Origin: Perkinsus chesapeaki ATCC PRA-425
Taxonomy: Eukaryota; Protista; Perkinsozoa
Assembly: GCA_013115145.1 (NCBI GenBank)
Contig: JAAPAO010000275.1
Location: 1-44,057 of the forward strand
Reading direction: 5' to 3'
DNA: 44,057 nt
The notes below the pieces were generated by a model. That model was not told where the DNA came from. It did not search any database and worked only from the letters and a program-made list of their open reading frames with translations. A program made the translations under genes and the position numbers. Each line of letters opens with the position of its first letter. Positions within the stretch are counted from its first letter, which is position 1. This document shows, piece after piece, positions 13,460 through 43,908 of the stretch.

Positions 13460-16100
13460 AAATTTACCTTGGTCGTCTACCAAATTAGACAAAAAATATT
13501 CAACTCATTAATACTAATCGAAAATAATAAATAAAATACTCTCTCCGCGGATCGAACCCACAACCTACCTTTCATCAAAATAAGACGACTCTTCCGAGGA
13601 TTCTTCAACAGCTTCATTTCCCCCAAACCCAATCAACGATGCAATCGTTCCTCTAATAGTTCTCCGAGCTAATAAATAAATCGATCACCTGGGCGAGCGC
13701 TTCTTACCAAACGTCTTACGTATTGTATTTCGCTCCTCAACTTTAGGGGGCATATTCGCCTGAAAATGCGAAACATTTCGCACTTCGCTCCGCTAAGATG
13801 AATACCTTCAATGCCTCGAGTTTCTTTCGACTTGCCTTTGCATTTGCGCGAAGCTGAAATCGATCGCTTGATCGATTTGTTAATCGATTATCCTTTGCTA
13901 CCTTTTTTCTGTATCCACTCGTGCAGCTGAATGCCACCCAAGAGAGGATAAGAATGAAAATTAAAAATGCTATTGTCACCATACGGGTAAATCTGACAGC
14001 AGAAATTTACAGAAAATTTCCGGAAAATTTCAGAAAAAAAGTTTTTTTCAAAAAACTACTTTCTTTCTGATTGGAAAATCGCGTTTCTTTCTTCTCCCTT
14101 TGTATGTTGCTTTGATACACAATCGGAGTCCTCGGAAGTCCACCACGTTGGCAAGTGTAAAAGGAAAAATTTTAAGTTTTTCCGGGAAATTTACGAAAAA
14201 TTGTTTCTTCCATAAGCACTCCCTCTTACCTGACAATCGCTCGCATTGAACAAGATTCTTTGAAGTTCCTGACGAATTCCAAAATGTTACCATCTGAACA
14301 ATCAGTGGCGACTTCTATTTGGCCTTGAGCGTCTCGGGACATGAGAAGCCTGAGGTCGGAGCATGCAAGATACGAAATAGGTCGAGTAAGATATATCACG
14401 CGTGAAGATAGCGAATCTAAGGTTGGAGCATGCACGATACGAAATAGGTCAAGTAAGATATGTCATGCGTGAAGATAGCGAATCTAAGGTTAGAGCGTGC
14501 AAGATACGAAATAGGTCAAGTAAGATATGTCATGCGTGAAAATAGCGAATCTAAGGTTGGAGCGTGCAAGATACGAAATAGGTCAAGTAAGATATGTCAT
14601 GCGTGAAAATAGCGAATCTAAGGTTGGAGAGTGTAAGATACGAAATAGGTCAAGTAAGATATGTCATGNNNNNNNNNNNNNNNNNNNNNNNNNNNNNNNN
14701 NNNNNNNNNNNNNNNNNNNNNNNNNNNNNNNNNNNNNNNNNNNNNNNNNNNNNNNNNNNNNNNNNNNGCGTGAAAATAGCGAATCTAAGGTTGGAGAGTG
14801 TAAGATAGATAGTAGTTCGGGATGAATACTTCCACCTATCCACAAGTGTGCTAGATTACCTAACCCGATAGGTAACAACTTGCTGCCAACAAGTCATATC
14901 CTACGTTGAAGCGTGCAAGATCCATAATGACTCAGACTTACTGCCCTCCTTCACTGCTGGCTGTCAACCCCGGTGTTCCAACCATCCTCCCATTTCCTTC
15001 AACCACCGGAGCCAGAGCGTTATATTCTGAAACTCGCCGAGATCAGAGAAAAGATCGGTATGAGATTTCCTTACGAGTTCGAACGTCGCTTGTCTTGTAC
15101 TTCGGGAGCCGCCAAATAACCGTCTCCGGAAGATCCACTCGCTGAGGGATTAGCTCTGAGGGAAAAAATATTAATCGATCAACTGATCGATTTTACACCC
15201 CTTTCGTCACTTTAAAAATTTGTTTGAAACTTCGAAACATTTCGCGGCAAAACCAACTTCCCATGGAAGATGAGATTCGATGGACATTTCCGGAATTATG
15301 AAGAATAACTGCTTACCTATTCCGGAATCTTCGATCGACACCGGGTCACCTCCGACCAAATGCGGACGTCTTTCGTATCGAACTGGTTTGTCCGATAAGT
15401 CGGTATTCAATAACCGAACAATCAGGGCGCTCCTCCAACCAGCCTGATAAGAGGAAAAGTCACCTATTCCTTCATGATGCACGCTTCAAGCTAGGATTCT
15501 CTCACCTCTGGATCACCAGAAGGACATTCCCCTACTGCTACGCACTCGCAAGATTTGCTCCACATGCAAGTCATATCTAACAATCGAAGGGTCCCGAGTT
15601 CGATCCCGGTGATCATCATTTTACTTTTCTTATTGAAACTGACAAATTCAAAATTGTTCCCCACATGCTCCCGAGTATATTGCGCACAGGCAAGAATCTG
15701 ACAAGATACTCTTACAATCGTCACGCGCCACTTAATTACCGAATCGATTCCTAGTCGGCTCCTCGTGTCAACGTGCCCGGCAAAATCAGGACAAACTCCT
15801 GCTACATCGGGCTGGTCAAATTCTGAAAAATGGCGGAAAGTTTCGGAAGTTGCGAAATGAAGCAAAAAATTTTACAGAACTTTTCCAGAAACGATCATCA
15901 GAAGTGTGATAAGATCTGTACGCGAAAACAGAAAAAAATGTGAAATTGTAAATTTCACTGAAATTCTGCGGGAAAATTTTTCCCCAAAGTTTTCCTCACC
16001 TTTCAGCCGAAGACTCATGACCGCGTTCGCCACGAAATTATACACCACCAGCCGCCTCATAAAAAAGTAATAGCTGCAACAACAGTGAGCCAACAGCGTT
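13460..16100 (-). CDS. Multi-exon membrane protein with a Cys-containing (PAN-like?) region and one TM helix
   Basis: Spliced frame ..GIDS|ILACAQYTREHVGNNFEFVSFNKK|NMTCMWSKSCEC..DPE|AGWRSALIV.. TM segment VTIAFLIFILILSWVAF. Then LK|ANMPPKVEERNTIRKTF|ARRTIRG..SSYFDE. Ends uncertain. Confidence 0.55.
14361..14805. repeat. Minisatellite, 67-bp unit, at least 5-6 copies, with an N gap, derived from intron family A
   Basis: Equivalent positions at 14368, 14435, 14502, 14569 and 14636. Minus-strand unit begins TTGACCTATTTCGTATCTTGCAYGCTCCAACCTTAGAT. Confidence 0.9.
15577..15624 (-). other. Probable intron consisting of an antisense tRNA 3' half (family B)
   Basis: Plus strand CT AAC AA TCGAA GGGTC CCGAG TTCGATC CCGGT GATCATC A TTTT AC. 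On the minus strand this is GTAAAA..TTAG (48 nt, in frame, so not proven by frame). Confidence 0.6.
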
Positions 16101-16250
16101 GAGGAAACACAAGATCCGGCAAGATTGCAAGATTCCCAAGACTAACGCTCATGATCGGCATGAAACGGTATAAGTATAGTACGTACCAAATTACAGTCCT
16201 GAGAAAGCGTTGGGTAAATGCAAGCGCGAGCAAGATTGCAAGATTTACTG

Positions 16251-19200
16251 TTAGAATATGACAATATCAGATTTACTGAGAAGATCCACTCGTCCATCGA
16301 TACCGCCAACAGCCATGTAGTTCGAATTCCGATGTATAGAGAGAAGTGCCGAGCTTGAAGGGGAGTTATTGAATTGACCTAAAAAATATCTTTTGGGATT
16401 GAAAGAGTTAAGGAACAAAAGATATCTTTGAGGTTGAGATTGCAAGATACGTTACAGGTCAACTTTACCTTCTAAAAGAGCTATTTCAGCTTGAGAGTAC
16501 ATGAAACCGTCAGGTATCCTATCTCATGCTTTACACTTACCCTAGAGTTGTCTCATGCGGAAAATATTAAATTGAATAACATTTTTGGTAGGAAAAATCG
16601 ACTGGAATTTCAGCGCTTATATAGCTATTATACCACACAGACGCGCCGCTTCCTCTCTAATAAACTTCCCACAACACCCACAGTTACTAAAGCTAGCGAA
16701 TCAGGGGTGTCATTTGCCTGAGACATAAAAATACAATGTGTCTTAGCGGGGATCAGTGTTCCTAATGCGCAGTAGATAGAATGGCAATACGTTCCAAGAT
16801 CAAAAGTAAACATAAAATACATTACTTCTGAGACAGGAATGACTTTCATTGGAAATCAACCCGAATTTTTCCCGTAACATCTTCCGCGCCCCACTCTGCG
16901 CGGTTAATCGATTACTGCATAGCTAATGCTCCCCCCAAAAAGCTGTAGACCAGAAATAAGCCTTTGTTGAATCTTTTCCCGCCTTGAGTTCATGCCTGTG
17001 AGTGAACCACTAGCAGGTGATGGTGATTATAGTGATAGTGTTAATAAAAAGCAAAGAAGCAATGAGTACTATAAATTTATGATAATGAGCAGTGGGTTTC
17101 CGCGAGCTTCAGGACAGTGCAGCTATAACGGCAAAAAAACCGTTCATCGCGATTTACGGAAAATTATCAATTTTCCGTGAAGTTGAAGCGAAGAACTGAG
17201 TTCTTACGCAGTTGTAAAACTTTGGTGGGCATTTCGAGCCCATCGTCAATCTCGCCAATCGATTCCATACTGAGGCTCTCACTTGATGATTTTAGGGACT
17301 TACGCATATCCCAGAATCTAAAGATACAAAATAGGTTGACTTGGTCAAATAGAGGAAAGATACAAAATAGGTTGACTTGGTCAAATAGAGGAANNNNNNN
17401 NNNNNNNNNNNNNNNNNNNNNNNNNNNNNNNNNNNNNNNNNNNNNNNNNNNNNNNNNNNNNNNNNNNNNNNNNNNNNNNNNNNNNNNNNNNNACAAAATA
17501 GGTTGACTTGGTCAAATAGAGGAAAGATACAAAATAGGTTGACTTGGTCAAATAGAGGAAAGATAGAAAATAGGTTGACTTGATCAAATAGAGGAAAGAT
17601 ACAAAATAGGTTGACTTGGTCAAATAGAGGAAAGATACAAAATAGGTTGACTTGGTCAAATAGAGGAAAGATACAAAATAGGTTGACTTGGTTAAATGCA
17701 GGAAAGATACAAAATAGGTTGTCTTGGTCGAATAGAGGTAAGTAACACACTCCAGCGTATCTTTCGATATCACGCAAAAAAACGGGGTCGGCCTAAGATT
17801 CGGTACAATACATAATCGGGCCGACCTAATATGAAGCCAAAATATCTTCCATTATCATGAAAACCCCGGGTCGACCTAAGATATCCATCAAGTGATGTTC
17901 CAGCAACTTCCCATTGTTCCGCATTCAATCCAGTAACAGCCGCATCGCTTTCATCATCTCCTCCACCAGATACAATATTCGCCTCAATATCAATGCATCT
18001 CACACTTCCATCAGAACAACCAGCGAAAACTGAAAAACAAAAAATGCTTCGCTCCGCTTGGCAAGGAGTATCAAATTTGGAAATTCACTCGACGGATATA
18101 GAACGCTACGTGAAAACTATTCAATAAATTACTCTCAAAATCGAGAACAAAAAACGCTTCGCTCCGCCAGACGTAAACTCAAATTTGTTCAAGACAACGC
18201 CCTTTCGCAGAAAGAAATAATTAGCCTAAATTACTAGCCAAATTTCATCTCTTAAAAGCAAGCCCTTGCTGAAAAACGGGAAACAAAAAACGCTTCGCTC
18301 CGCTCATATCTTACCACACTTTCCTCCATTGGCACTATTTTGTGCTACTTCCAAACAAGTTATCGGTGCACCGGATTCCAATGGAGCAGTTCTGCTGATA
18401 AACTTCCCACTGTGAATATCAACACTCCCGACCGTGCCATCAACAAACCCGATCACTAGCTTGTTACTCACATCAGAGGGGTGCCTGAGCATATCGATCA
18501 CGTGATCGATTGCAACAATCACCGCCAATTGGCCATCAATGAGTTTACCACATTCCAGTGCTTTTCACGGGTTTGTGTGAGCCATTTATTTTTCTCATTT
18601 TCCCGCCTATTTTTACGGGAAAAGGAATTGTGAAAATTTTCAGAATATAAATTTTCCGCTCATTTTTTTTGACCAATTTCCAGCTGATTTCAGAAAATTT
18701 TTCTAGGAGACCTTCCTCGTCGCCGACGAGTCGTCGGCCTCGAAAGCTTCTCCATCCTCCCGAGCACAATTAATTTTAATGAAGGTATTCCCCAAAAGAT
18801 ATGTGCCGTCTTTTAGCTCAAATCAGTTAGACGGACAAGCGTTGCCATAAATACAGTACAACAACACTGATATCAGTAATTACCGATGAAATTATAAACT
18901 TAAAGGACTATAAATTCGATCTTCCTTTCTCCACTCTCAACTTGGCCAACATTATTGCGCTGGCCATGATATGATCTATATCGCAGCGACATACAACGAC
19001 GATCGAATGTGAAGTCGACACCATCATTTTCAAACTATTCCCGCGTTTTTCCCTTTTATCCATTGCCGAACAGAAACTCTTTTCGTCCGGATTTTTCTTT
19101 CAGGCAGAACGCCTGCTTTTAAATTAAAAAATATCTCCCCCACCGGGATCGAACCCGCGACCTTTCGCTTACCAGCACAGCGCGCTCGGCGTGACCGTCT

Positions 19201-22200
19201 TCCCCTCTTCAACCAGCTTGAATCTCTGAGCCAGTAATTGTAAGAATGCCACGTCTTCATTCCCTGGGGAAAAATCCCGGAATTTTTCGGGAAAAAATAC
19301 CTCCATTCGGGGCGGAGACTTTCCAGACGCACGCGGTTCCATCGCTGCTGCTGGTGGCGAGAAGACTGAAAATTAACAACAGGAAAATAATGAAAGAAAA
19401 ATTACCGAAAAGTCACAGGAAATTCGGGAAAATTCTGGACCTCGCGAGAACACTGGAATTGAAGAACTCCAAAAAACTTTCTGAACATTTCATGTGAAAA
19501 AATGAGGAGTCTGACGAAGATTTGCAGGGAAATGTCCAAGCCTACCAATCTTCAGTTTTTCCAAGTCGAACAGACCAAACAGAATCCTCATGTCGGCAAA
19601 CTTCTTCTGTTTTTACAAGAGCGGCAATTTCGCGGCGCGGTGACAAAGCTCTGACCTCTACGCCCGAGGGTGGCAAACGATACATAGATACCTGAAGTAT
19701 ATTCCATTTACAGCTAATTCACCGTCGTAATAATGGAGGATAGTATTAGTGATGGAGTGCCACACTTCCACCTATCTCACCAAGCCCAGCAATATCTTTA
19801 TTAATGCCGTCAATGCCAAAGTCAAATTTCACAAATTATGCAATTAAGGCTAATTTTCATACTATTTTCGACAAGTGATCATTCCGCTGCACTCTATAGC
19901 TCCATACTAGTAATCAGTACTAGTGGGTTAGATCGATCACCAGGGCGCGCGCTTTAGCTCATCTCACCACTCCGTCGGCCCTGCCAGCGATAATCGTTCG
20001 ATCATCTTCCCGATAAGCCATCGAAAGGACACCAGACGCTCCCCCACGAAGACATAACGGATCATCCAACGTGATTCCTAAGAATAGTGATATCTTGCAA
20101 TCTTGCTCCCACTTGCATTTCCTTAACGCTTACCTCGAGGTGAAGTGGTATCGGATTCAGGTTCGATGGAAGTTGGTAGATGCCATACCTTGATAATGGC
20201 ATCTTCTGAGCCTAAATGGGATGCATCTTGCACGCTTCAAGCCCGGATTCTCCAAATCGATCGATGGACCGATTTACTCACCAGTCAATAGAGTCTTTCC
20301 ATCATCCACAACCATACAGCTCCTCACTGCTCCCAAGTGGGCATTTATTCTAGCGGTAGAGCGCCACTCCTTCGAACCCTCTGTTGGCGAACCCGCGCAA
20401 GTTCCATGCCGGGGGGAGGCCTTTTTCAAAGGCGGTGGAAGCGACCCCTAAGATCGAAAGAAATTTCCAGAGGCTCAAGAAATCGCATAAAAAGTATTTT
20501 GGCTGAGTTCAGAGTCAGCGACTTGCATTATACAACGAGGGATATCTGTAGGTCATACAACAAAGAGATGTAATTGAAAAGTGAATCGATTGTCGAAAAG
20601 CGCACGTTCTAGACTAAGCGCACTGCAGTTCTTTCTGTGCCAGGAAATATACTGCGATCACGCGCATCAGTCGGTCGATTGCGAAATCCTATCCTACGGC
20701 TACATTCGATTTCCGACCTCAAAAATATCTTTCTTAAACTCCAATACCACCCACCGACTACGGATTGTAAAAATTTGAGTACCTCATAGAGGTTGAATTT
20801 CCGACCTCTGGAGTATCTTTCTCAAAACCGACTACCCCAAAGCTAAGCTTCAACCTAAGATACCCTTACCGTTTTCAAATTCTCTTTGGTGGGAAATCTC
20901 GCAGCTTGCATCCATGAGGTCGGCGAGGGTGGTGCCTTCACCGCATTAGCCGCCGGACTGAATGAATTCACGTATTCCATGGTGACGATCCTGGTTCGAT
21001 TCCCGGTAGAGGAAGAATCATCAAATTATAATTATTTCCCGTAAATTATATCAATTCATTTCCTCGAGAACGAAACCGTAAATGAAACTTTGGGAAATTT
21101 AAACAGTTTTTCCAATCTCTATTTTTCCTATATTCCGCCCTTCTGCCATTTCCCCACAAGTGATAGATTTGAGTTTTCTGTAATTCAATTATCAATCGTG
21201 AATTTGCAACACTTCATTAATTAATCGAATGGATGTGGAATTCGGAAACAATCCCCATGATCTACTTGGGAATATCTTAGCTCGAAGCCTGCAAGATATA
21301 AAATAGCTCAGCCCTAGTGCCTCACCTTTTCAAAGTATTTCCTGATTTCGGCGACTTCCCTCCACTCTGAAGCCGCGTCGAGTTACCCATCCGAACCCGA
21401 CCCTCGCTTCCGCCAAGACTCGTCCTGCTCGGACTTGATTGCAGACTTTTACGTATGTAACTGGTAAGACTAATATAATCGATCACCTGATCGATTTCCC
21501 AACTTACTCTCTAAATTCATCAGCACTTGCTCTCGCCGAGGCCATTGGAGAGGGATTCTGACTCGACGTTGTGCTACCGAGTGCTCCCAAGTGCGCACGA
21601 AGCGCTTCGACCGGCGAAACCGGAAATGACGAAATCGAAACCGTTTCGCTCCGCTCAGAAATCGGCGGTGTTGCGCTCACTTCTCTATCAATCTCCGAGC
21701 CTGATAAATTGCCAAAAAAACATAGAAATATTTTTTCCGAAATTATCCTTGATAAATATTATTAAAAATTAAATTGAGTAAACTACAGCGAGCGTTACCT
21801 GCCTCCCTCGGCTGAGACGTAAAACGATAAAATCTCTAATGCTGGTGGATGAACGAAATAGACCGGAATTTTCAAAAATTTCCTCAAATTTCCCCCAGAT
21901 TTTTAACATTTTTTTCTGCACCAAAACCTGTAGTCGACCACGCTTGCCTCCCAAGAACACTCCGCATAGTAGATACTTCATCAGAGACTCATCTACCCTC
22001 ACGGATAGATGTTCCTCGTTGACCCAAAACGAGGTGCTCTTAATGCGCAGTAGATAGAATGGCAATACGTTCCAAAACATAAATTACATTACTTCTGGGA
22101 CAGGAGTGACTTTCGTTGGAAATTAGTCCGAATCTTTCCCGCATGAACTTCTGCGACTCCAAAGCTTTCGCATTGAACATCTGGCTCTGCCGTCCAGTAT

Positions 22201-22500
22201 CCAATACCACATAAATTTATAAAAATCAATTTCGACTTCCCGAAAACCGCGCTTAATCACCACCTTCTTTCCGCTGTAAGATCTCCACGGTTGCTCGCTC
22301 CCTTTTCAATGCGAATTCCAACATACTTATCCGTCTCAGATAATCTTCCGCTTTCGCACTCTCAGCCTCGGCCACCTCCTCAGCTTTCTGGCATCTCTTC
22401 ACTAATTCGTATCTTACAAAGATAATTTAACGTGCTCATTTCATCAATACGCCGCTGACTTCTAGAGACTGTATTAACTCTGCCGCACTGCATCTCGAGC
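16251..22500 (-). CDS. STRN: Striatin-like protein (N-terminal coiled coil, C-terminal WD40 repeats), multi-exon; start uncertain
   Basis: DYLRRISMLEFALKRERA is the striatin coiled-coil signature. WD repeats AHLGAVRSCMVVDDGKTLLTG|SEDAIIKVWHL, HEDSVWSVRL, LLATSSSDGTACVWKV, TPSALCW|HPSDVSNKLVIGFVDGTV, VFAGCSDGSVRCID, GTSLDGYLR|FWDM, YMAVGGIDGRVDLL..*. The order matches my recollection of striatin. Confidence 0.8.
17320..17730. repeat. Intronic minisatellite, 36-bp unit, with an N gap, related to the 5' half of family A
   Basis: AGATACAAAATAGGTTGACTTGGTCAAATAGAGGAA repeated. Lies in striatin intron 17318-17875. Confidence 0.9.
18485..19172 (-). other. Striatin intron beginning with a tRNA 3' half (family B) and ending with a family D palindrome
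   Basis: Exon ..CTG|GTAA GCGAA AGGTC GCGGG TTCGATC CCGGT GGGGAGA TATTTTTT. Removal gives the WD-consistent ALCW|HPSD. Confidence 0.8.
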
Positions 22501-22655
22501 TCGGCTTTAACATTTCGAACATGGAAGCACCTCAATTAAGGTCTTCACCAAAACCCTATTGAACCAGTATTATTAAACAAGTAGGTAATAATAACGCTAA
22601 AATATGATGTATAGTATTACTATAGCTCATAAGCAGTATGTAGTAATTGTATACT

Positions 22656-22990
22656 ACTTGTTAGTATACTATACACTGTATTAGCATAGCAGTAAGTATA
22701 CAGTACTTGTTAGTATACTATACACTGTATTAGCATAGCAGTAAGTATACAGTACTTGTTAGTATACTATACACTGTATTAGCATAGCAGTAAGTATACA
22801 GTACTTGTTAGTATACTATNNNNNNNNNNNNNNNNNNNNNNNNNNNNNNNNNNNNNNNNNNNNNNNNNNNNNNNNNNNNNNNNNNNNNNNNNNNNNNNNN
22901 NNNNNNNNNNNNNNNNNNATTAGCATAGCAGTAAGTATACAGTACTTGTTAGTATACTATACACTGTATTAGCATAGCAGTAAGTATACA
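22656..22990. repeat. Tandem repeat, 49-bp unit, with an N gap
   Basis: ACTTGTTAGTATACTATACACTGTATTAGCATAGCAGTAAGTATACAGT at 22656, 22705 and 22754, and again after the gap. Confidence 0.9.
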
Positions 22991-22999
22991 GCCCGAATT

Positions 23000-24600
23000 C
23001 AACCACACCTACTACTGAAGCTGCACTATTCGGTACTAGATGAAGTTTATTGGAAAAGCAACCCAAATGGTCGCAATGAATTCTACCATCATTCGCGCTT
23101 TACTGGAAAGAGATCCAGACACCAATGCCCCTAGACACAGAGACCTCTAAGCTACTCTGGGGATCTCTCCGTTCTCTTCAGCAGCTAACTACTTTATCAC
23201 AGTCAAATAAGCAGGAAATAAGTACTTTTTAAACACGCTCAGCAACGTCGTGAAATGCTAAAAAGAGAACGCAGTTCATATTTTAACATCATTCAAGACA
23301 CATATTCCTCCTTGATCCAAAGGATCTCCCCCGGAAGTATGTGACATGCGTTCACGACACTACCTTTCCAGGTCGGCTTCTGCCTGGTCACGTGCAAGAT
23401 GCCTCTTCAAGTCCTGAAGGTCTCGTACAACCTGGAAGATACGATCGCATTATCAACATTTAAGAGACATATGACCTCACTGTAGAGATTTATGAAGATA
23501 TGTTCGCACTACAAAGTTTTCAAAGATACGAAAAATATATTTTTACGTTTGAAAATCAGAGGATCCCAGGAAGGCAATAATAAACGGAACAACAACGGGT
23601 ACTAATTTAGTACCATCCTTCTGCCTCCCATAAAGCATCTTATTTTCCATGAAAAGCACGCTTCAAGCTATACGATATGAAATAGAGAAGCCAGCCAGTG
23701 GCTATATACTACAAGGGCGATGAACTACTGAAACATGTTGCAGTCAAGGATACTTTCACCGCGGAGATGATTAATTTGGAAAATAAGGCACCCTTGCGAG
23801 CACGACATAGTAAAAAGTAATTCACTCACATTTGAGTAATTAATCGTAATGAAATGTGTTAACAATTTATATAAAATTATTATGTAATTAAATTAATATT
23901 ATTAATGAACGCTCAAGAGTCTGGAGGAATCTCTGAGTAGTAGAGTAACTAATATTCAATGTTGATTCGCCATCTCAAAGTGTGACTAATTTTACAATAT
24001 ATAATTTGCCCATTATCACCTTTTCAATCAATAAAGTGGCAACATCATTCACAGACTTCCTTCCACCTTCGACGCGATGATGATGACCGACAGCAGAAGA
24101 TGCATCCATGGTCATTATCGAAAGATACTTCGGAGGTCGGAAATACAACCTCAGTGAGCTTTCCAAGGGAATAGGAAATGCGTTTTAGCTGGATAATCTT
24201 GGATTTTGAGAAAGATATTTTTGAGGTCGCGATTGAACCTACGTGGTCGATTGGATGATTTGGATGGAGGAGCTGATTTACACTCGGACGGCTTAGTCTA
24301 TTGCGTTAACTCAAATATCTCGAGGTCGAGTGTGCAAGATTCAGTCGAGGTTTAACGAATGGTCGAGGGTGAAATTAATTTAAATTGAGGATCATTTCGA
24401 TCCGTGGAGTGCACTAGTCAACCTAATCGTTATTCCTGTGACCGACACATGATATAGAGCTGTATGGTATCTAACGCTGAAGCATGCAAGATGCAACAAT
24501 AGTTCCACCATCGTTTTCGATCACTTACTTTTCAGGCGAGCGCGCTAATGAATAGCTTATCGCGCGCCTCAAAATCGTTCGCTGGAAATATACAATTCCC
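23000..24600 (-). CDS. Possible multi-exon hypothetical gene or pseudogene
   Basis: Exon-like VVRDLQDLKRHLARDQAEADLE between AG and GT, plus several family A introns oriented on the minus strand. Not fully reconstructed. Confidence 0.3.
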
Positions 24601-24674
24601 GTTCACGAAAAATCATTCCGGGTCGTATCTTAGCTTGAAGCAAACATGATTCATATCAGGTTAATACGCTGTAC

Positions 24675-25273
24675 ATGTTATCCTTCATTTCCCTTATCGC
24701 CGTCGCTCTCTCTGCACCCAAGCCTGGCCACTACAAGATGATCCAAGGCGATTATAGCTTCAAAAAAATAACCAATATTGAAATCGATATCGCTGATTAT
24801 AAACGTAGGCAGCTCGCCAATCTGACATTTGTTTCTGACACTTCTAGCCGTGAGATCAAGAATGCCCACCTCTGCAAGATGCTTGACAGCTTGAAGGCCC
24901 TTGACTTTCTGACCAGAAAAAATGTGCTACCTTCGCAACCTGCGCCTCCTGCCCTGACCGAGACCAGCAGAGTGATGATTTCAAGCAACTTAAATCAGTC
25001 GGTTCCGGGGATTTGACCTACGTGACGGCTCACGCATCATTCATCTGCGAGGATGGTGACAATATAGCGTTTTTGATCTCCAATTCGCATATGAAGAGCC
25101 CCGATGCTTTCGTACGTGTTAAGCTCGAAAGGGTTCACGACGACCATGAAGATGATAGTAACGAATTTAAAGGGGCAGAAATCGATAGGGTTTACGATGG
25201 CAAGGTTAAAGGTGCTGGAAAAAGAAAAGCTTATACCCCAATTAAATATGTAAAACGTGTAAGAGTGGAATAG
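24675..25273 (+). pseudogene. Intronless secreted-type protein split by a 1-base frameshift
   Basis: Signal peptide MLSFISLIAVALS followed by APKPGHY. A second frame is open from about 24905 (KCATFATCASCPDRD..TYVTAHASFICEDG..VRVE*). The shift maps near the A6 run at 24917-24922. Confidence 0.55.
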
Positions 25274-25460
25274 GCGTGAATGTTATGTAATGATGTAATG
25301 ATGATGTCAATTGTTGATAGTATAATTATCGAGTTCAAGTTCTTTTATTTGGTTAGCTGTGAACAGGCCGGTATCTTTTACCGGTGATGAATGCACTCAT
25401 CAACCTGTGTTACGCACTCTAATGAATTTTGTAGGGAAATATATTATTCTGTTTTTCCCG

Positions 25461-28254: not shown

Positions 28255-28474
28255 TAGAAAGGAGTTTGATAGGAAATATGTTACTAGTGATACGGAGGAG
28301 ATATAATAGAAAGGAGTTTGATAGGAAATATGTTACTAGTGATACGGAGGAGGAGATATAATAGAAAGGAGTTTGATAGGAAATATGTTACTAGTGATAC
28401 GGAGGAGGAGATATAATAGAAAGGAGTTTGATAGAAAATATGTTACTAGTGATACGGAGGAGGAGATATAATAG
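28205..28474. repeat. Tandem repeat, 55-bp unit, 5 copies
   Basis: AGGAGTTTGATAGGAAATATGTTACTAGTGATACGGAGGAGGAGATATAATAGAA at 28205, 28260, 28312, 28367 and 28422. Confidence 0.9.
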
Positions 28475-28526
28475 AGTGACTCTTCTTGCGTACGGAAATT
28501 CGTGACGTTTTGAAGTTGTTTGTTAG

Positions 28527-31500
28527 TTACATGCTAGACCACAGAACTACATCAAAGATAAGGATGCTAAGAGTGGTAAGTTGACCTATCGTGTATCTTG
28601 CACGCATCAAGCTCAGGAGAATCTTCGGAATGCAATGAAGATTCGGACTCTGACAGCGAAGGTGACGAATGGTATCTTACGGGAGACAACTCGCCCGGAG
28701 GAATCTCGATTGCAACCGCGACCGCGCGCCACGATATTGGCGATCTGGAGACCTCGGCAAGCACTGCTGAGGTTGAAGCTGGTAAGTGCGAATCTTTATA
28801 GTACGAAAGATACGTGAAGTGTTATTAGATGTTACGGGTGGAGTTAGGGTGTCGATGTGTGGTGGATTGGTGATGTTGCAAGGAAGCTGTACATATGTGG
28901 ATACACATTCCGGAAAGGGGGAAGGTACGTTAACATCTCAGGTATCTTGCATGCTTCAAGCTAAGATATCTCTCTCAGTTACCCAGTCGGAAGATGATCG
29001 AGTTGGAATTGCTCAACTTCCGATGCATTTGGCTCCCTCGACCACTACTATACATTACGTCTACGGAAACAGTAAGAAAAACCTTCGCAGTGCGCAAAGC
29101 GTATCCCATTCAGTGCGCAGGTCGTATCTTATAATAGATATTCCCATCCTTGGAAAACTTTGTGGTGCGGTGAGCGTATCTTAGCACTTAATCAATAACG
29201 ATGAATTATATCCGGTCACAGAAATCTCACGTATTTCAGAAAGGAAAATTTATTCCTTTTTTGCAAATTTTCCGCAATTTTAGGTTTTCACTGCCAAGAT
29301 AATTTTTTGACGGACTCGGAAGATTTTTGATTGGTCTCAGATAAATGGAGCAGGGAAAGAATCGAGATCGACCCGACTGGAAAAATTATGAGTTGCAGCG
29401 CGAAGACTAGAACGCTACATAAGAGAACCGAACTCTCTGGCATAGTGTTCGTAAGTTAACCTTTCGTGTATCTTACATGCATTAAGCTAAGATACTATAT
29501 TGAACTTTTAGGCGCCGCGGTCGAGCCTTGCGAAAGATGATGGACTCTTGGATGACGCCGCAGGGCTAGAGGTGGCGACAGGCTCACGAAGTAAGGTGTA
29601 CCTCGAGGTTAAGCGTGCATCCCACAGGTTAAAAGATACTCCTGTCTCAGATGGCGAGATTCCAACCGCCTTATGCGCTGGGAAGTTCGCAGAGGATTTG
29701 AGCAGGCAAGATTGGAAGGATATCCTGGAAGAAGTTACATCGTAAGTTATTTTGCTTCCTGCGCGCTTCAAGCTTGGATATTCCTAGGGCATACGAAGAC
29801 GCACTTGAACGTCGACATGTTAAAGAGAAATATCCGAAATGCGAAGATGACCGGAAATCGTTCTCGTTCGATGTGAATCAAGAATTTATAAAGTAAGATG
29901 ATTCTCTTCGTTTCTGGTGAGAGCGCTTCATTGCCTTCAGATACGGAAAGGATCATCGAAGGGAAGAATCGGAAGATTGGCGGTTGAAAATGGAGAGGAC
30001 GAGTCGGGTAAGGTCGTGGGTTCGATACTCGGTCTTGGCATTTTTCCGGGATTTTTCAGAATTTTCCTAGAAGAGATTTTCACAGTGCAGCAGATCCGTC
30101 GATGATGACGATTTTAGCTGATCGAATTGCGAACGAATTGTAAGATTCGGAATAGATTGATGTGAGGCCCTTAGATATCTTGGGTTGAAGCGAGGTTTTT
30201 TGGAAATGGTGTCATTTATTTCTCTGCGAAGTATGTAGTTTTTCACAAAAAATGAGGAAGTTTACGAAGAAGTATTTTTCCTCAAGAAGGAAATTATTAT
30301 CGAGACTCCAGCGTGAGGAAGTATCTTAGCTTGAAGCATGCTTTGTGAACATGTCTGGCTGAATCTCATTACATGATCAGGGAGAATTTCTATTTTCCCA
30401 AGTACAAATTGCCAGTTGAAAGTGATTGGGAAAACGTGAAAGATGAAACGCTCCGCTCCGCTAGATATAGAGCGACTGGATTAAAAAAGCGAGTTGACGG
30501 GCTTCGAGAAATCATTGAGAGATATGGAAGCACGAATGATTCGCAGGATAATGGAGGAGGAAACGCTCAAGCTTTGAGGGTAACGTATATTGTATCTTGC
30601 ATGCTTCAACCTAAGATACTCCGTGTCAGGCACTTAGGCACTTTGGCGAGCAGCAACAACAAGGCAACTGGAAACTAAGTCCGCGTGCTTTGGCCTTGCC
30701 TCAAGTGAGCGGAGCGAAGCGTTTCTTATTTCATTTCTTGTGCTTCGCTCCGCTAGTGTATTATTTTTCACTTTTTAGTTGCGAAGTCTGAAGAACGCTG
30801 ATAAGGAGACTTTCGATAAATTCATGGAGGTGAGCAGTTGGTCAAAAAAACGAAAAATCCGACCTCCTTTGATTGCAACCTCATTCGTGGAAAATTCATT
30901 TAGGCAAGTTGTTTTGGATTTTTTTCCTCATTTTTTCCAGGAACTAGCGAATTTTCCGTTTTTGGCAGATACAGGAGTGGTGGCTTGGTTTCGATACAAA
31001 TGAGAAAGTGTTGACACACAGCACTCTGATGGGCAACAAAGATGCATTTTCGTGCAGGTAAATTTATCGTCTAATGTAGGCTCGGAAAAGTTATTAAAAG
31101 GCCCATTTTACTGGGTCACCTTGTAGCTTTGTCGCCTACATTGCCCGATTGACTAAACTCACCACTGGAACTGTTTCCCAATGCAAATATATGATAGAAG
31201 CTTTATGTACCTCAACAGACGTTCCAACGCTAGTGGAGATTGGTTTACTCAGACTAGCGACAGCAGTCACTTATAGAGTATTTTAATCTGTGTTCTTCTT
31301 CTGGCTCCTCGGTGGCTAGAATCCTTTCTTACCTTAAGTGTAGCTCATTAACCTGTGTTCTTCTTCTGGCTCCTCGGTGGCTTGAATCTTTTCTTCCCTT
31401 GAATGTATCTCCTTATGTCTGACATATCTGAATTATTTCTATTTCAGTGGCAAGTGGCGCATCCCTGATGATCCGAGCGTCCAGAAGGCGTTGTTCTACA

Positions 31501-34500
31501 ACAAGGCGTGGTTGTATAAGCATGGCGTGCACACGTATATTTCGGAAATACAAACACCAATGTAAGAATCTTCCGGCAACTAGTTTCCAATCTTTCTGGT
31601 CGGAGTGTGGGCGAGCGAAAGGACGATTTTGGCGTGTCACCATCATCTGCTGAGATCATCATTTTCCATGGCATTTCTTTCGAAATTTCTCTCGCAATTT
31701 TCCCGATTTTTTCTTTCTCTAAATCAGTCTCATCTTGGAATTTTTGGGGAATTTGTCGGGAATTTCTGTCAGTTTTCGGAGATTTTTTTGTAGTCCAAAA
31801 TTTTCCAACATTTTTCCGAATTTTTTGCTCTTCTTCAGTTTCCCATTCATAGAAGATATCGATTTCGAAGGAACATTCCACGACATTGAAGGCTCAGGCG
31901 ATTTGGATACGATCATCTTGGACGAGAATTTAATGTTCTTGAAAGAGTAAGAAAAATACCCCCACCGAGGATCGAACTCGGGTCCTTTCGATTACCAGAC
32001 GGGTACAAGCGTTGCATTTATTCTTCCCCGATTTGGACAAGTTCAAATGCCACGTCTATTCGGCGTCGGGATACAATAAAGGAAAGGAGCGATGGAAGAG
32101 TTCATTTCATTTAGTATGGCCTGATTTGATAGTAGATGGAACAATGGCACCAACGATGAGGTGAGCGTTAGGGAAATCCAAGATTCAGCAAGAGTGGCAA
32201 GATTTTAGGAATGTTACTGTTGAGCATTTTGAGGACTTGACGAGGAGGGATCCTTATTTTAAATTGATGTAAGCGGGAGTTGAACCGGGGGTTGGATGGT
32301 TTCGAAAAACAGTCTGGTGCTCTACCGCTGGAGTATTTGGGAAGTAAATGGTTCGTGGATGATGATATCCACGAGAATTGAAGGAATGACATCAATCTGG
32401 TGGACACGTCTCTGGATTTTTCATATTTCAAAAATTACCAAAAGAATGTATCTTTGGGATTCTTTCAGGTTCAAAAGAATGATGAGATTTTTCGATCAGA
32501 ATATTTGGGAAAATGTCTTTGATCAAACCACAGCGAGTGCCAAGAATGGTTTGAGAATGCCTTTCTGTAGGTCGCGGGTTCGATCCTCGGTGGGGGCGTT
32601 TTTAAATTGATTTGTGTGTATTTTCAGGTAACAAAGTTTCGTGGCATAAAGACGCCGAGGGAAGGAAACAACCGAGAGTTGAGGATCGCTTCTCGCTGCC
32701 GATTGGTAGGTTGAAGCTTGCACCTTCTACGTGAGAAAGATACGACTTTAAAAATGATAGGCAGTAGGGTCGCGTATCTTACGTTTAAGGATGCTTCCCA
32801 CATTTTTTAAAGATACGCTAATCCGAGGTCACTCTCATAATTGAGTATCTTAGGTTGAAGCTCGCTTTTGACTTCTTTCTCTCCAGGAACTATCGAGTTT
32901 GAATATACACGGAAAGAAATCGGTCCAAAAGAATTGGAAAGATATCGCCGGGACGAACAGAAAAGGTTCGATCAGGCGGAGAACGATTTCAAAGAGAGAT
33001 TACAGTAATTGACCTATGTTGCATCTTGCACGCTTCAAGCTAGGATATTTCAGTGCTTCTAAGGATTACCGAGATATCCAAGGTGATCGAACCTCAGCCC
33101 ACACGAGCGACAAGACTTCCATGGATAGAAGTTTGGCATTTGCCAAGGCTTTGAGGAAAATAGGCGGAGGTAGCCTGGTGTAAATCTTGCTAAATCTTGC
33201 TTAATCTCAACGTTCGAATCAGATCCACGGTATTTGACTGACTTGAAGGCTCGTTGGATAACGGGGCCGTTGAAGAAGGACGAACTGAGAGATATGGATA
33301 TAGAAACAATAGCGGAATGGATTGCTCGAGGTAACTTACTATATATCTTGCATGCTTCAAGTTAAGATATGCTTCTCAGGTTCCTGTCGGAGAGGCCAGT
33401 ACACCACTGATGATGTGACCACGTAGGGAAAAACTTTTCTTCCGCAAATTTTACCGAAATTTTTTTCAGCCCCAACGCAGATTTCGTAAAAGCCTACGAA
33501 GAAGCAGATTTCGAATTGATAGAGGAAATAGGTCGGTGTCGTTGACGTAAAAAGCGCACGCCCAGTTGATCGATTTCAGGCCTGGATGCAATTAAGGAGA
33601 CTGACAAGTGGAAGAAAATGACGCCGTGTGCCCAGAAGGGTGTGCTTGTTAGATTTCAACAGTGAGTGGGGAATTTGGTGTTTTTTCCGGGGAAAAATTA
33701 ACTTTGTGTTGTCAGTAATTTGCCAAAATTTCAACGTTTTCGAGAAAAAAATCGTTTAGATTCTTGGAAGGAATTATTCTGTCGGGAAATTTTCGGAAAT
33801 TTCAGTGTCTCTCTTGAGTTTTCAGGGAATGTTCCGTGGCGCCGGAAATTATTTTGATTTTTATTGTAGGTATCGGCAGAGCCGAGGGCTTTCTACGGAG
33901 GGAATAACAGTGCGAACGTCGAAGAATAAGAATAGGGGGAAAAAGAAGGTAACTTGTTTTGTATCCTGCATGCTTCAACTTTGGATACGTCTCAGAAGAC
34001 TAAGGAGAACAGTCAGACTACTGTTCAAGAAGAGGAAGAAGTGAGATGTTTTGGCGTGGCGAAGTCTGGTCAACTGACGTCCTCTGAAATTAGGTGAAAC
34101 CACCGACGGGACGATCTGGATTCGATTTCGATTATTACAAGCGAGGCAAGGATAATGGAGGGGAATCTTGTATATGGAGGTAAAAAACTCTACTCCTTTC
34201 GTATCTTGCACGCTTCAAGCTAAGATTCTCCGACACCTGTACGGAATTCAAAAAGAAATTCAACGAAGGGCTTATGGACCAGGATTTCGTTGCATCGGTA
34301 AGCGTGGTAAATCCATCACGTAATCGATCATGTAATCGATCTCGTTTTCAGGGCTTCGGGGCTCTACGAAGTTGTCTCAATCACCCTTTCGGCTGTTCCT
34401 GGTCGAGGAATCGGAATGGCCGCGGAGTTGTGTGGAGATCTCCACCGGAGAAGGATTTGGGAGATATGGGATTTTATAATTCTGACGTAAGATACGAAAT

Positions 34501-35263
34501 GGGTTGATTTGATGACCTCTGTCGAGTTCAGAAAAATCACCATCCTTGGAGGGGAAGCGGTTCCAGAATATGGAGAGATGGCTGCAGAGAATAGTAAGCA
34601 GTGGGGAAGGAGTATCTTGAGGTTGAGCGTGCACGTTACGAATGAGGTCGTTGAGGTTCGCACGGCACGTAGACTCTTCCTATCTGTGGAATGCAGTAAT
34701 CAACCTCGCGTCGATGAAATGCAAGATGACGTGAGGTTATGAGATTGTTTCAGTTTCGTGCCTAAGTTCGGGTTGAGAGAAGACATGGTCGAAGTTAGGC
34801 ATTACGAAGTATCACAAAGAGTCATGCTTATGGGAAACTGCAATAGTCAGCTATACAAGGTGAGCTCCTTCGTATCTTTCAAGCATCAACCTTAGATATT
34901 TGTTGAGGTTGAAGCGCGTAAGATACAAAATAGGTCGATCTGAAATACTTTTTAGGACGTCGCATCTTTGCTGGAGCTCATTTGTGATGGACCCGATCCC
35001 GCTTTGTATAAAACTTTACCGAGTTGCGAGACGGCGGACGACGGAGACGTTCTTGCGGGTGTAATGGACGACGTTTCGGCAAGAAATGAACTCCAAGCGT
35101 AAGAAGAATCTTAGGTTGAATCACGCAAGGTACTGATGAGGTTAGGTATCGCGACGAGCTTGATTCTTCGGATGTGGAAGATGATGATGACGAGCTAGTT
35201 CCCGAGACCGTCGAGCTAAACAAGTTGTCGCCAGTGATTGAAGAATTGACCGATTCACATTAA
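28527..35263 (+). CDS. Large multi-exon protein with a central archaeo-eukaryotic primase (PrimPol-like) domain; start uncertain
   Basis: Spliced frame FME|IQEWW..AFSC|SGKWRIPDD..YISEIQTP|IFPFIEDIDF (motif I DxD)..LKE|RVQALHLFFPDL..KSSFHLVWPDL (motif II SxH)..WENVFDQ..GLRMPFC|NK (motif III)..FSLPIG|TIEFEY. Continues through many GT-AG introns to the acidic C-terminus ..EELTDSH* at 35263. The 29165-29450 join is less certain. Confidence 0.75.
30008..30059 (+). other. Intron with tRNA T-arm and terminator (family B)
   Basis: GTA AGGTC GTGGG TTCGATA CTCGG TCTTGGC A TTTTT..TTTTCAG. Removal restores the frame RTSR|NFPRRDFH. Confidence 0.7.
30708..30754. mobile_element. 47-bp element with perfect 13-bp TIRs at the 5' end of intron 30705-30778 (family C)
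   Basis: AGCGGAGCGAAGC (30708-30720) and GCTTCGCTCCGCT (30742-30754). Single arms recur near 7024, 9826, 13781, 18047, 18157, 18291, 21646, 30449 and 37642. Confidence 0.7.
31284..31410. repeat. Two-copy 65-bp direct repeat in an intron of the AEP gene
   Basis: CTGTGTTCTTCTTCTGGCTCCTCGGTGGCT at 31288 and 31353. Confidence 0.85.
31947..31998 (+). other. Intron consisting of an antisense tRNA 3' half plus terminator (family B)
   Basis: GTAAGAAAAATACCCCCACCGAGGATCGAACTCGGGTCCTTTCGATTACCAG. The reverse complement reads CT GGT AA TCGAA AGGAC CCGAG TTCGATC CTCGG TGGGGGT A TTTTT. Removal joins AEP motif I to motif II in frame. Confidence 0.85.
32567..32627 (+). other. Intron consisting of a sense tRNA T-arm, acceptor strand and terminator (family B)
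   Basis: GT AGGTC GCGGG TTCGATC CTCGG TGGGGGC G TTTTT ..TTTTCAG. Removal restores LRMPFC|NK. Confidence 0.85.
33005..33053 (+). mobile_element. Representative family A introner-like intron (more than 25 related copies in the window)
   Basis: GTAATTGACCTATGTTGCATCTTGCACGCTTCAAGCTAGGATATTTCAG. Related introns at 28576-28616, 28925-28978, 29451-29511, 29742-29787, 30580-30629, 33331-33379, 33949-33995, 36681-36732, 37145-37195, 37438-37494, 38596-38644 and 38752-38814. Confidence 0.75.
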
Positions 35264-35501
35264 TTTAAACGTTTCAACGATTCCCCTGTCGCCGTGTTCG
35301 CCAGTAGGATTTTATCCTCCTTCGGAAGAGGTTCTACGAAAAGTCCCAAGTCTTCGTAGGAGACAAATCTGCTCCACCTGATGCCTCGGGGATTGGCTCA
35401 AAATCCAATTTTCCTCCGATGTTGATTTCTCTAAGCAACTTGAAGAACTTAACTTTAGCAATTTTTGGGATACGATGTGTCAGCTTATCCTTTCCCTTGA
35501 T

Positions 35502-38500
35502 ATGAGCGGTACTGTCGTCGAGAGGATCCGTTCAGATTGGGAAGATTTGGAGACGATCGAGAAGGCGGCCTCGAAGGTTTTGGTGGAGCAATCTAATAAG
35601 GCTGGAAGCAATCAAACTTCGAGGGTAGTATCTGATATTCTTCCGAGCGCGCAGGGAGAGGTATCTTTGAGAAATCGGGACGAGAAGATATCTTTCGAGT
35701 GCGTAGNNNNNNNNNNNNNNNNNNNNNNNNNNNNNNNNNNNNNNNNNNNNNNNNNNNNNNNNNNNNNNNNNNNNNNNNNNNNNNNNNNNNNNNNNNNNNN
35801 NNNNNGCTTACGATTATGGAATATCTTTTGAATCTTTCGAGTGCGTAGCTTACGATTATGGAATATCTTTTGAATCTTTCGAGTGCGTAGCTTACGATTA
35901 TGGAATATCTTTTGAATCTTTCGAGTGCGTAGCTTACAAGTATAAAATATCTTTTGAATTTTTCGAGTTTTGAAATTCTAGTGCGACAATGTTTATCCAG
36001 TCGACTGAATCAAGCTGCTATGGCATCGATCTATGAATTTCATGGCGCGTGACATTTTACATTTTACTTCAGGTTGCCTACGATTATGCCTTAGTAGATC
36101 TCGTAGAGCAAAGCCGTAAGAAGGCAGAGGAGCTCGAGAGACTTTACGATGACAAGGACGGCCAGAAGGAAGTAAGAAGGCTCGTGCAGCAGTTTTACTG
36201 AAGATCTTCTCTTGGGAATATTCCATTAAAAGTGTTAGTAGAAGAAGTCACCGGAGGAAAAATCGGCACTGAAATATTGGTGTGAATTTTTTGGGGAAAA
36301 CAGTTCATCAAGATTTTTTTGTCGTGCTTGCGAGAATCGATGGATGTGGCTGCTGGCGATAAGTATCATATGTCTTTCAGGAGGAACTGTCTTCTCTCTT
36401 GGGGAAAGGCGGGGAAATCTGGAGCAACTTTTACCGGAAAATTAAAGAGGTAATCCAATCGCCCAGATTCGATCCCCGTAGGCGACAATATAATATTCTT
36501 CAGGCACAAGATTACTATGCGAGAAACAGCGAGAAGAACTCAATGCCGAAGGTCGGAAAATTTTCGATGATTTGCTGGATCGTGGTGGTTCCAGGTTCCG
36601 ACGGTCGAGAGCTGGTTTAAGGACAGTTTGGCTCATCAGAGGAGTGAGTTCCAATTCAGTGGGGAAGAATCGTTTGGAAGGTGACCTGTTTTATATCTTG
36701 CATGCTTCAAGCTAAGATAATTTCTCGCTCAGATATGTTGACATGCATGAACTCTATGACCAGTTTGTTAACCTGAAAAGATACGCCGAGTAGCTCAAGT
36801 CAACCTCTGGCGTATCTTTTATCGAGAAAGATTTTTCTCAGGTTCAGACGGAAACAGTTCCTAAGTACTTTGTGGGAGAAGTACGAGAAAAAGCATCAAG
36901 CGAAAGCTGATAAGGGAAAAAAATCGGAGGAGAAAATTCTTTCCCAAAAAGAATTTCTGGCGGAACACGAGGGGGACTATAATGAGATTGATTACATCTC
37001 CTATTTGAAGACGTTCGACCAGTTCCATCATATTCCGAGGCATCTGAAGTAGGTCGGAAGGAATGTAACTAGGTTAGCTGCGAAATGTAGGTACAAGCAG
37101 AAGGATTACTTGGAGTATCTCAAGGCGTTACAGGAGTATCTTAGGTGAGCTATTTTGTATCTTGCACGCTCCGAGCTAAGGTGCGTTTTTGTTAGGGGTT
37201 TCATTCAGCGCCAGCGTCCGCTGTTTGACATTGGGAAATTGGAGAAAGAGTCCGAGGACGAGTTCCAAGAGAGATGGGCGGTGAGCAAATCGATCACCTG
37301 ATCGATTTCGAGTTTGACGCGAAATTGTGCATTGTTAGGCTAAGTCTGTCCAAGGTTGGAGCTCTGGTTTCACTCGAAATTCTAGCCTCTACTGCCCACC
37401 GACTGATAGACTCTTCGCCAACGAGCAAGCCCTAGAAGTACGCAACTGGAGCTAGTCCGTATCATGTGAGCTTCGAGCTAGGATATTATCTCAGGGCCAC
37501 AAGAAGGGTAAGGAATTCAAGAAGGCTGCTGAGAGGATGGCTAAAATGCACCCCGCCGAAATCGAGGCTCTCAATAAGCTCTCGGAGAAGCGAGATATGG
37601 AGTTAGCTCGACTGGAGGTGAAAAACTGAAAACCTGAAACACTTCGCTCCGCCTGGAATGACATTTTGTTTGACCAGGTTATTATACAAAAATATAAGGA
37701 AACGTTGGCCGACACGATTGATGAGACAGTTGAGTATTTAACGGTCAGACAAGCCAGGTGAAGAGGTGTAATTTTGTGGCGCGCGAAATTTGTTCTGTGG
37801 CTAGAACCTTGGATGAGATAGAAACAGACATATGGTACGAGGAGCACGGTGGAAGGGAGACGTTTGAAGATGAGAAAGATGATGTGTGGGATAAGAAGGT
37901 GGGAGATGACTTGACTTTTTAGTCTAGTGGTATCTATGTCCGTTGTATACCGCTGCACCCAGGTTCGATCCGTACTAGCGTGATTTAATTATTTATTGTT
38001 ACAAAGTTTCTATTCCTCTACAAAAGCCTCTCCGCAATTTTCTAATTCCCCATAGAAATCGTCCACACGGGTGACCCGTGACGGGTCTACTTCCCTTTCT
38101 TTGATCGATGCATCATGTATGCATGAACAACGCTATAAAAACCGACTCTTTGAAATTCTTTTGCATTATTTCTTTTCAGTGGCAAATTAGATAATTTCTG
38201 TTTTTTCAGGAGCAAGACTCTGACAGCGATTCTGATGATTCTGACGATGGTGACAACCGTGCACTGTAGGGAGTATCTTTAGGTCGACTCGTGGCTATCT
38301 TCTCTAATTTCAGATATAACCCTCTGAACCTTCCAATCGGATGGGACGGCAAACCGATCCCTTTCTGGTTGTACAAGTTGCATGGTCTAGGGAAGCCTTT
38401 TAGGTGGGGAGCAAATCGATCACGCGATCGATCTGATGTTTTTTTGGTAGATGCGAAATTTGCGGAAATTATACCTATTGGGGACGCCGGGCGTTTGAGA

Positions 38501-38848
38501 GGCATTTCACCGAGTGGCGTCATGCGCATGGAATGAAGTGTTTGAGGATCCCTAACTCAAAGCATTTCCATGATATTACTAGTATAGAGGATGCGGTAAG
38601 TTGAGCTACTTTGCATCCTGCATGCTTCAACCTATGATTCTCAGATCACTTTATACGAGAAGTTGAGACGTGAACAAGCTATTCAAGGATTCGACCCTGA
38701 TGCGGATATTGAGTGCGAAGATAACATGGGAAACGTTATGAACCAGAGAACGTAGGCTATCAACTTAACCGGTTTCATATCCTGCACGCTTCAACCTAAG
38801 ATGCGTTTCTTCAGATACCGAGATATGCTCAAACAAGGTCTCATCTAA
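35502..38848 (+). CDS. SF3A3: Splicing factor 3A subunit 3 (Prp9), about 17 introns
   Basis: [17 protein letters not shown].., [16 protein letters not shown]|[99 protein letters not shown]|[10 protein letters not shown]. All junctions restore the frame. Confidence 0.95.
35688..35970. repeat. Tandem repeat, 42-bp unit, with an N gap, in SF3A3 intron 1
   Basis: ATATCTTTTGAATCTTTCGAGTGCGTAGCTTACGATTATGGA at 35821, 35863 and 35905. Confidence 0.9.
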
Positions 38849-43404: not shown

Positions 43405-43908
43405 ATGAAATGGTTCAACTTGAGCGCAATCGCCTTCGTTGTTTCTAGTGCTCTCGGTCGCTCTGATATTGCAAGGGACTGCAAATCATTCTGTGACCAG
43501 CACAGTGAGGGTGCTTGTACTCGTCATGGTGGTGATTTTGAGTGTCATTTTGACACCAGGCATGGCAACATATGTTCGCAGTTGTACTACACCGATGTCA
43601 CGGAGACTACAATATGTATTGATATGAGAGAAGACGGTAGGTATGAGTGCCAACCGAACATCCCAGTACGGTGTGAGGTTTGTCCAACTCCCACAACTAC
43701 TACCACGACCACAACCACAACTACTTCTACGAGTACCACAACAACTAATACAACCACTACAACTACTACAACTCCTACAACCACTACAACCACTACAACC
43801 ACTACAACCACTACAACCACTACAACCACTACTTGGCTCAAGGCAGTTGTTTTTTCCTCTAACCTGCTAATTCCCTCTCCGGGCTTTACTTCATATGCCA
43901 ACGACTGA
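43405..43908 (+). CDS. Secreted Cys-rich, Thr-rich mucin-like surface protein (3' end probably disrupted)
   Basis: Signal peptide MKWFNLSAIAFVVSSALG, Cys-rich domain CKSFC..CEVC, then a poly-Thr tract (ACNACA repeats, about 43687-43833). Confidence 0.75.
   Translation: MKWFNLSAIAFVVSSALGRSDIARDCKSFCDQHSEGACTRHGGDFECHFDTRHGNICSQLYYTDVTETTICIDMREDGRYECQPNIPVRCEVCPTPTTTTTTTTTTTSTSTTTTNTTTTTTTTPTTTTTTTTTTTTTTTTTTTWLKAVVFSSNLLIPSPGFTSYAND

Follow-up and report, generated by a model that had tools for sequence, protein, structure and literature searches.

Many very short introns in a 44,057-nt stretch of Perkinsus chesapeaki ATCC PRA-425 (contig JAAPAO010000275.1; the whole stretch is hereafter the window) are built around one motif of about 40 nt, which we call family A. 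The motif takes up nearly all of many introns of 41-63 nt, and these introns lie in unrelated genes. Its arms, box and spacing are conserved above the neutral level between Perkinsus species, and the conservation is confined to these defined sub-motifs. We favour the reading, at a probability of roughly 60%, that family A is an ancient, vertically inherited Perkinsus cis-element that is kept by selection in minimal introns as a pre-mRNA recognition module.

The full unit consists, in order, of a 5' splice site, a box, a 5' arm, a 14-nt centre, a 3' arm, a tail and the final AG. The 5' splice site has the form GTAAGT, GTGAG or GTAAC and precedes the box by 0-14 nt, its register varying from copy to copy (GTGACCT, GTAAGTTGACC, GTAGGCTATCAACTTAACC). 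The box, (G/A)ACCTATTTYG, is directly followed by the 5' arm GTATCTT. The 3' arm is AAGATAC, and the short tail behind it is pyrimidine-rich and ends in AG. In the window genome the centre between the arms reads GCAYGCTTCAASCT. The 7-nt arms are internal, not terminal, and the splice sites are not provided by fixed ends of the element. Of the 14 arm pairs in the window, 10 have their arms exactly 14 nt apart, as do all nine copies from the two other species compared. CTAAG lies 8-20 nt before the 3' AG and overlaps the first bases of the 3' arm; by its position and sequence it is likely to be the branch site.

The core ATCTTGCAYGCTTCAASC (18 nt, up to three mismatches, both strands) has 33 matches in the window against 0.20 expected from 100 dinucleotide shuffles, the highest shuffle count being 3. 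The arm pattern occurs 14 times (0.9 expected), and an nhmmer profile built from 14 copies gives 37 window matches at E<1e-3. Twenty-five copies outside tandem arrays have a mean pairwise identity of 67% across the unit, falling to 36% in the tail. Among genes of known strand, an orientation-specific core search places 16 matches in sense and 3 in antisense orientation.

About 20 sense copies fill GT..AG intervals of 41-63 nt, and about five further copies lie antisense within introns. The host genes number at least four and are unrelated: at 28.5-30.7 kb, at 32.9-35.3 kb, SF3A3 at 35.5-38.85 kb, and a minus-strand WD40/striatin-like gene at 17.7-22.5 kb, the only gene named by Pfam on the exon pieces. 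Outside SF3A3, intron bounds were placed at GT..AG in the consensus positions, and it is from these bounds that we infer splicing of those copies. Open reading frames were discarded as a guide to intron bounds outside SF3A3; they are too unspecific, long open frames being common here. An initial sequence-only reading had described dozens of 41-63 nt introns with a hairpin-forming consensus between 14361 and 38814. A recurrent intron motif in unrelated genes is borne out by the enrichment, and the sizes are right. The number comes to about 20 intronic copies plus copies in arrays, and position 14361 belongs to a tandem array with a 67-bp unit and not to an intron.

Splicing was followed in RNA for SF3A3, based on contigs placed on 33000-38900 from the only two public runs, both small, that contain this locus. 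These contigs join exons across 11 SF3A3 introns, three of which carry family A (joints 36677/36731, 37140/37192 and 37435/37493). The gene model (36073-38850), built from the RNA joints and from frame continuity, has 16 introns and a 510-codon open frame once these are removed, and it aligns with SF3A3 of other eukaryotes. The family A copies in this gene are spliceosomal GT-AG introns whose removal restores the frame, including the junctions FGR|YVD and YLR|GFIQ that had been pointed out from the letters. Strong copies form intron 4 (36681-36732, plus strand; spliced in RNA), intron 7 (37145-37195, plus; spliced in RNA), intron 15 (38596-38644, plus) and intron 16 (38752-38814, plus). Intron 9 is a weak copy (37438-37494, plus; spliced in RNA). 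Intron 5 (36790-36841, plus) is a degenerate one with box, arms and a short centre, and intron 13 (38266-38313, plus) holds an antisense half-copy.

The nearest relatives of the window SF3A3 are Perkinsus olseni proteins and contigs. Ortholog pieces came from P. olseni JABANM010023883.1 (L002) and from two Logan contigs of run SRR12548988, which represents another Perkinsus species (L001, L003). Protein queries (P0002, P0162 and part of an SF3A3 exon) brought back nothing beyond fragments of P. olseni and a single Logan contig, and the orthology comparison is that of SF3A3. At about 72% overall DNA identity between the window and these pieces, the alignments cover 12 intron positions, every one of them common to the compared species. 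Introns 4, 7, 15 and 16 occupy the same positions and still contain the unit in the aligned orthologs: intron 4 in the SRR12548988 species, introns 15 and 16 in both other species. In the SRR12548988 species, the ortholog of intron 7 (L003 1640-1790) is about 127 nt long and holds two near-identical tandem units, which suggests how minisatellite arrays of the unit may start. The antisense half-copy of intron 13 is present in P. olseni, and the SRR12548988-species sequence aligns poorly at this intron. The degenerate motif of intron 5 is absent from the same intron of the SRR12548988 species.

Conservation within the orthologous introns is uneven along the unit. Identity between the window and its orthologs is 79% in the 3' arm, 76% in the 5' arm and 68% in the box, compared with 50% in the centre, 50% in other intron bases and 56% at third codon positions. 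Taken together, the two arms are identical at 65 of 84 positions (77%), which by our own calculation lies about 4 standard deviations above the third-codon rate. Neutral sites between the compared species are near saturation. Single copies can also be followed by their own variants: the rare AAGATGC of intron 16 is common to the window and P. olseni, and GATTC of intron 15 occurs in all three species. Such shared variants indicate that each copy descended in place and argue against repeated insertion.

The centre behaves differently from the arms. It is 73% identical among the 25 non-array window paralogs and 50% identical between orthologs; G-rich centres (TGGTGGGGTAACCT, GTGTGGGGGACCTG) are seen in the SRR12548988 species. 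In this small sample, the contrast could mean that each lineage has its own consensus, produced by conversion or by co-evolution with a factor that reads the element. It may be inflated, since the profile used to collect the window copies includes the centre; an arms-only search lessens this concern, though not fully.

None of the family A intron positions is shared exactly with SF3A3 of Durusdinium, Eimeria or Symbiodinium. Introns 7, 14 and 15 lie near Durusdinium or Eimeria introns, not at identical positions, and the Symbiodinium gene has two introns only. The positions thus seem to be particular to Perkinsus, and the motif does not lie mostly between genes; the sequence-only reading had named ancestral positions shared with distant taxa, or a mostly intergenic motif, as what would overturn it. 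Given this restriction to the lineage, the family may go back to a single sequence that multiplied in a burst in the ancestor of Perkinsus, though it is no longer spreading.

What the element would do in present-day introns is suggested by its orientation and layout. The sense bias and the placement of CTAAG at branch-site distance favour a pre-mRNA module that combines a branch site with a bipartite platform. Under the favoured reading, purifying selection would maintain the element because, as a composite module in the pre-mRNA, it allows very short introns to be recognised. The module would provide or expose the branch site, and it could serve as a binding platform, whether a protein recognises both arms at their fixed distance or an snRNA (small nuclear RNA) pairs with it.

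Several observations weigh against this reading. The arms can pair, and a hairpin in RNA is at best weakly indicated: 76.1% of alignment cells are paired against 74.7% in column shuffles, a level reached by 42 of 500 shuffles, and the covariation score of 0.169 (0.151 in shuffles) is reached by 49 of 500. In folding stability, the 15 family A introns examined have a mean z of -0.27, compared with -0.05 in eight other introns. With neither covariation nor excess stability, the conservation is one of sequence and spacing, not of pairing. The structural intron motif proposed from the letters as an alternative is not borne out in the sense of an RNA hairpin; sequence, in the two arms and the box, is what is kept, at fixed spacing. 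The orthology sample is also small, with one gene, four strong copies and six pairwise intron comparisons. Antisense copies and tandem arrays fit an action at the level of DNA, or none. Gene conversion from the arrays could keep the family consensus without any selection, and the assignment of the branch site comes solely from its position and sequence.

The main rival is a docking site in DNA. Here the arms TATCTT-N14-AAGATA, with their GATA-like cores, would be half-sites of a dimeric DNA-binding protein and would merely be housed in tiny introns. Conserved arm sequence and exact 14-nt spacing around a free centre, with no compensatory change, are what such a site would show, and the inverted repeat is identical on either strand. 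The antisense half-copy retained in P. olseni and the occurrence of units in tandem arrays are also in keeping with it. However, a symmetric DNA site would be expected to show neither the 16:3 sense bias nor a box that always lies 5' of the arms, and the 3' arm stands at branch-site distance from the 3' AG. The binding protein itself is hypothetical. We consider a DNA docking site possible, though not probable.

A related burst could instead have left only fossils. In this account, one introner (an intron-generating transposon) spread in the Perkinsus ancestor and its copies are now functionless; their similarity is upheld by gene conversion, for which the tandem arrays serve as donors. It explains similar introns in unrelated genes at positions that distant taxa do not exactly share. 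Unit arrays do exist, the unit is tandemly duplicated in the orthologous intron 7, and the higher identity of centres among paralogs than between orthologs is what conversion would leave. The sequence-only reading had offered an old, diverged introner burst. Old, diverged and lineage-restricted the family is, its positions being shared by three Perkinsus species, but the transposon part finds no support. Two of the signs of transposition that had been proposed, target-site duplications at the junctions and presence/absence differences in orthologs of sister species, did not turn up: the mean length of the longest repeat at the junctions is 2.5 nt for 15 family A introns and 2.7 nt for 10 others, and the compared introns of SF3A3, a single gene, show no such difference between Perkinsus species. 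Offsets between splice site and unit vary, and copy-specific variants are common to orthologs. Conversion should also homogenise the centre, yet interspecies conservation is confined to arms and box. A functionless fossil is unlikely in our view.

A more far-reaching reading would make the minimal introns of Perkinsus a small vocabulary of docking modules, comprising family A, an ATCGAT palindrome, tRNA/B-box remnants and a CGCTTCGCTCCGC motif, with family A as a fixed-spacing bipartite site for a lineage-specific factor. We regard this as doubtful. If it were true, the 14-nt centre would be homogenised within each genome and differ between species, which would imply that dispersed intronic sites evolve in concert or co-evolve with a reader, and it would amount to a previously undescribed way to define introns.

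The unit might also derive from, or mimic, a splicing small RNA, which we judge very improbable. One candidate source is the 5' region of U2 snRNA, which we take to be CGCTTC...GCTAAGAT, GTATCT, so that the 8-mer GCTAAGAT would be common to U2 and the unit; the other is the spliced-leader RNA (ATCTTGGCTCAAG|GTAAATAT). Alignment of the unit to the P. marinus spliced leader (PMC9399869, PMC3101222) plus the start of its intron beats 97.6% of shuffles, and the P. marinus genome contains spliced-leader-like tandem repeats (PMC3101222). However, uncorrected for the several candidates tried, p is about 0.02 with the spliced leader and 0.09 with U2, so that both are retained as leads at most, and the resemblance lies mostly in the centre, the part that is not conserved between species. 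The spliced leader is absent from the window at up to three mismatches. A permissive Rfam scan of 28400-39000 returned no RNA family, with no snRNA, tRNA or spliced-leader match, and Rfam at the gathering threshold found none in the whole window.

A currently or recently active introner is largely refuted: the family resemblance of many introns and an internal inverted repeat are all that speak for it, whereas every compared copy is present in other species, the junctions lack target-site duplications, paralogs are on average 67% identical, the repeat is not terminal, and the species share all 12 of the SF3A3 intron positions that were aligned.

Introners are known from Micromonas, Aureococcus, Symbiodiniaceae and Amoebophrya. 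Like them, family A gives many spliceosomal introns of unrelated genes (profile matches in at least four) a common sequence over most of their length, it includes an inverted repeat, and its host is an alveolate near introner-bearing lineages. Amoebophrya introners have direct repeats at their junctions and non-canonical splice sites, and they are strain-specific (PMC7789003). In family A, by contrast, splice sites are canonical GT..AG, no junction repeats are seen, and the inverted repeat is internal at fixed spacing, with no terminal inverted repeats. The copies are old and common to diverged species; high copy-to-copy identity, a sign of recent proliferation, is not seen at a mean of 67%. 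Conservation limited to sub-motifs suggests maintenance, not recent spread.

The fungal introner-like elements of Dothideomycetes are likewise short, multi-copy introns, which are said to fold stably and to decay to ordinary introns. Family A introns fold no more stably than shuffled sequence, and they remain undecayed in orthologous introns despite near-saturated neutral sites. A third comparison is with intronic splicing enhancers and with the stems that present the branch site in short yeast introns, cis-elements that help the splice sites to pair and are under selection where they stand, as proposed here for family A. In the yeast introns the pairing is backed by compensatory changes, and the elements are gene-specific or short degenerate motifs. 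Family A differs in being a 40-nt unit that occurs in a third of one gene's introns, and it lacks compensatory changes.

Families of look-alike introns are normally read as the footprints of intron-creating transposons. Family A would be such a family that is old and maintained, and it cautions that introner calls made from similarity alone can be wrong. It also offers a concrete, testable candidate for how the spliceosome recognises introns of 40-60 nt, in a parasite of oysters and clams that is transfectable. In the full-text literature searched, no description of intron motif families of this kind in Perkinsus was found. Metagenome scans with a 24-nt core gave no match; seven matches to a 20-nt box-plus-arm pattern were set aside as chance 20-mers without the full unit.

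Outside SF3A3, one series of copies lies in the gene at 28.5-30.7 kb (plus strand; all nhmmer matches with GT..AG bounds). It begins with a 41-nt intron whose 3' arm is truncated (28576-28616; E=9e-13) and a 54-nt intron with the arms TATCTT-N14-AAGATA (28925-28978), both presumably spliced. Introns of 61 nt (29451-29511) and 50 nt (30580-30629) also show the arm pattern, and between them lies one of 46 nt with the arm variant TCC/GGA (29742-29787). In the gene at 32.9-35.3 kb, again on the plus strand and matched by nhmmer with GT..AG bounds, are two 49-nt introns (33005-33053, and 33331-33379 with the arm pattern) and a 47-nt intron whose arm pair is altered on both sides (ATCCT/TGGAT; 33949-33995). 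A further plus-strand copy at 34180-34232 (E=7e-12) has an uncertain intron 3' end. The 96-nt intron at 34860-34955 (plus strand; nhmmer) contains a sense copy with an inverted copy directly after it, an arrangement that would give a long hairpin of about 90 nt. In the permissive Rfam scan its only match was to a miRNA precursor, at a non-significant E=3.2.

Antisense copies were found at all three places where they had been noted from the letters. One lies antisense inside an intron at 32843-32865, and another lies in a plus-strand intron at 35099-35146 (nhmmer match 35102-35133, minus strand). The third was located by core search in a minus-strand intron of the striatin-like gene (20206-20281), as an antisense core together with the ATCGAT palindrome motif. 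The same gene carries a minus-strand, GT..AG-bounded family A intron at 21265-21325 (nhmmer). Other nhmmer matches on the minus strand are an intron-like copy of 59 nt with GT..AG (14883-14941), a GT..AG-bounded copy at 24467-24528 and a copy at 11546-11607 that is probably intronic, with uncertain bounds.

Family A sequence also occurs in tandem arrays. A 67-bp array on the minus strand (14353-14806) repeats the whole unit plus a 22-nt spacer and spans an assembly gap, and a second 67-bp array with a homologous unit lies on the plus strand at 25630-25792; together they contain 9 of the 33 core matches. A 26-bp array (27905-28070, plus) repeats the box and 5' arm only, and a 36-bp array with box and 5' arm (17320-17742, minus) spans another gap. 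All four N gaps of the window lie within minisatellites, with the same repeat unit on each side: 14669-14767 in the 67-bp array, 17394-17492 in the 36-bp array, 22820-22918 in a 49-bp array, and 35707-35805 in a 42-bp array within the first SF3A3 intron. Thus, array copy numbers in the assembly are unreliable. No family A intron and no reading frame spans a gap.

Other recurrent pieces are found in the SF3A3 introns. A second motif family, the palindrome AAATCGATCA..TGATCGATTT, fills introns 8 and 14 (37281-37338 and 38404-38450), is conserved in the orthologous introns of other Perkinsus species, and forms part of the striatin-like gene intron at 20206-20281. tRNA-like pieces lie in introns 2 (CCCAGATTCGATCCCCG; 36450-36503) and 12 (TAGTCTAGTGGTATC...GGTTCGATCC; 37899-38209), the first of which is retained in L003 as CCCCGGTTCGATCCCCGG; neither ARAGORN nor Rfam called them. 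Family A resembles both motif types in being a recurrent piece that fills tiny introns and keeps its place in sister species, but it has no likeness to tRNA or the B-box, is strongly sense-biased, and has its 3' arm at the expected place of the branch site. A further motif, AAACGCTTCGCTCCGC, recurs in several introns on both strands (at about 18040, 18150, 18290, 30440, 30720 and 37640).

Elsewhere in the window, ARAGORN calls a single tRNA, a tRNA-His gene at 4008-4081. It adjoins long minus-strand open reading frames (1600-4100) that by eye have the look of an LTR-type (long terminal repeat) retroelement, with a zinc-knuckle-like CWTCEGWGH. Near the other end, at 43832-43841, the Perkinsus spliced leader is represented by its final ten letters (TTGGCTCAAG), directly after a Thr-coding ACAACCACT repeat in a mucin-like open reading frame.

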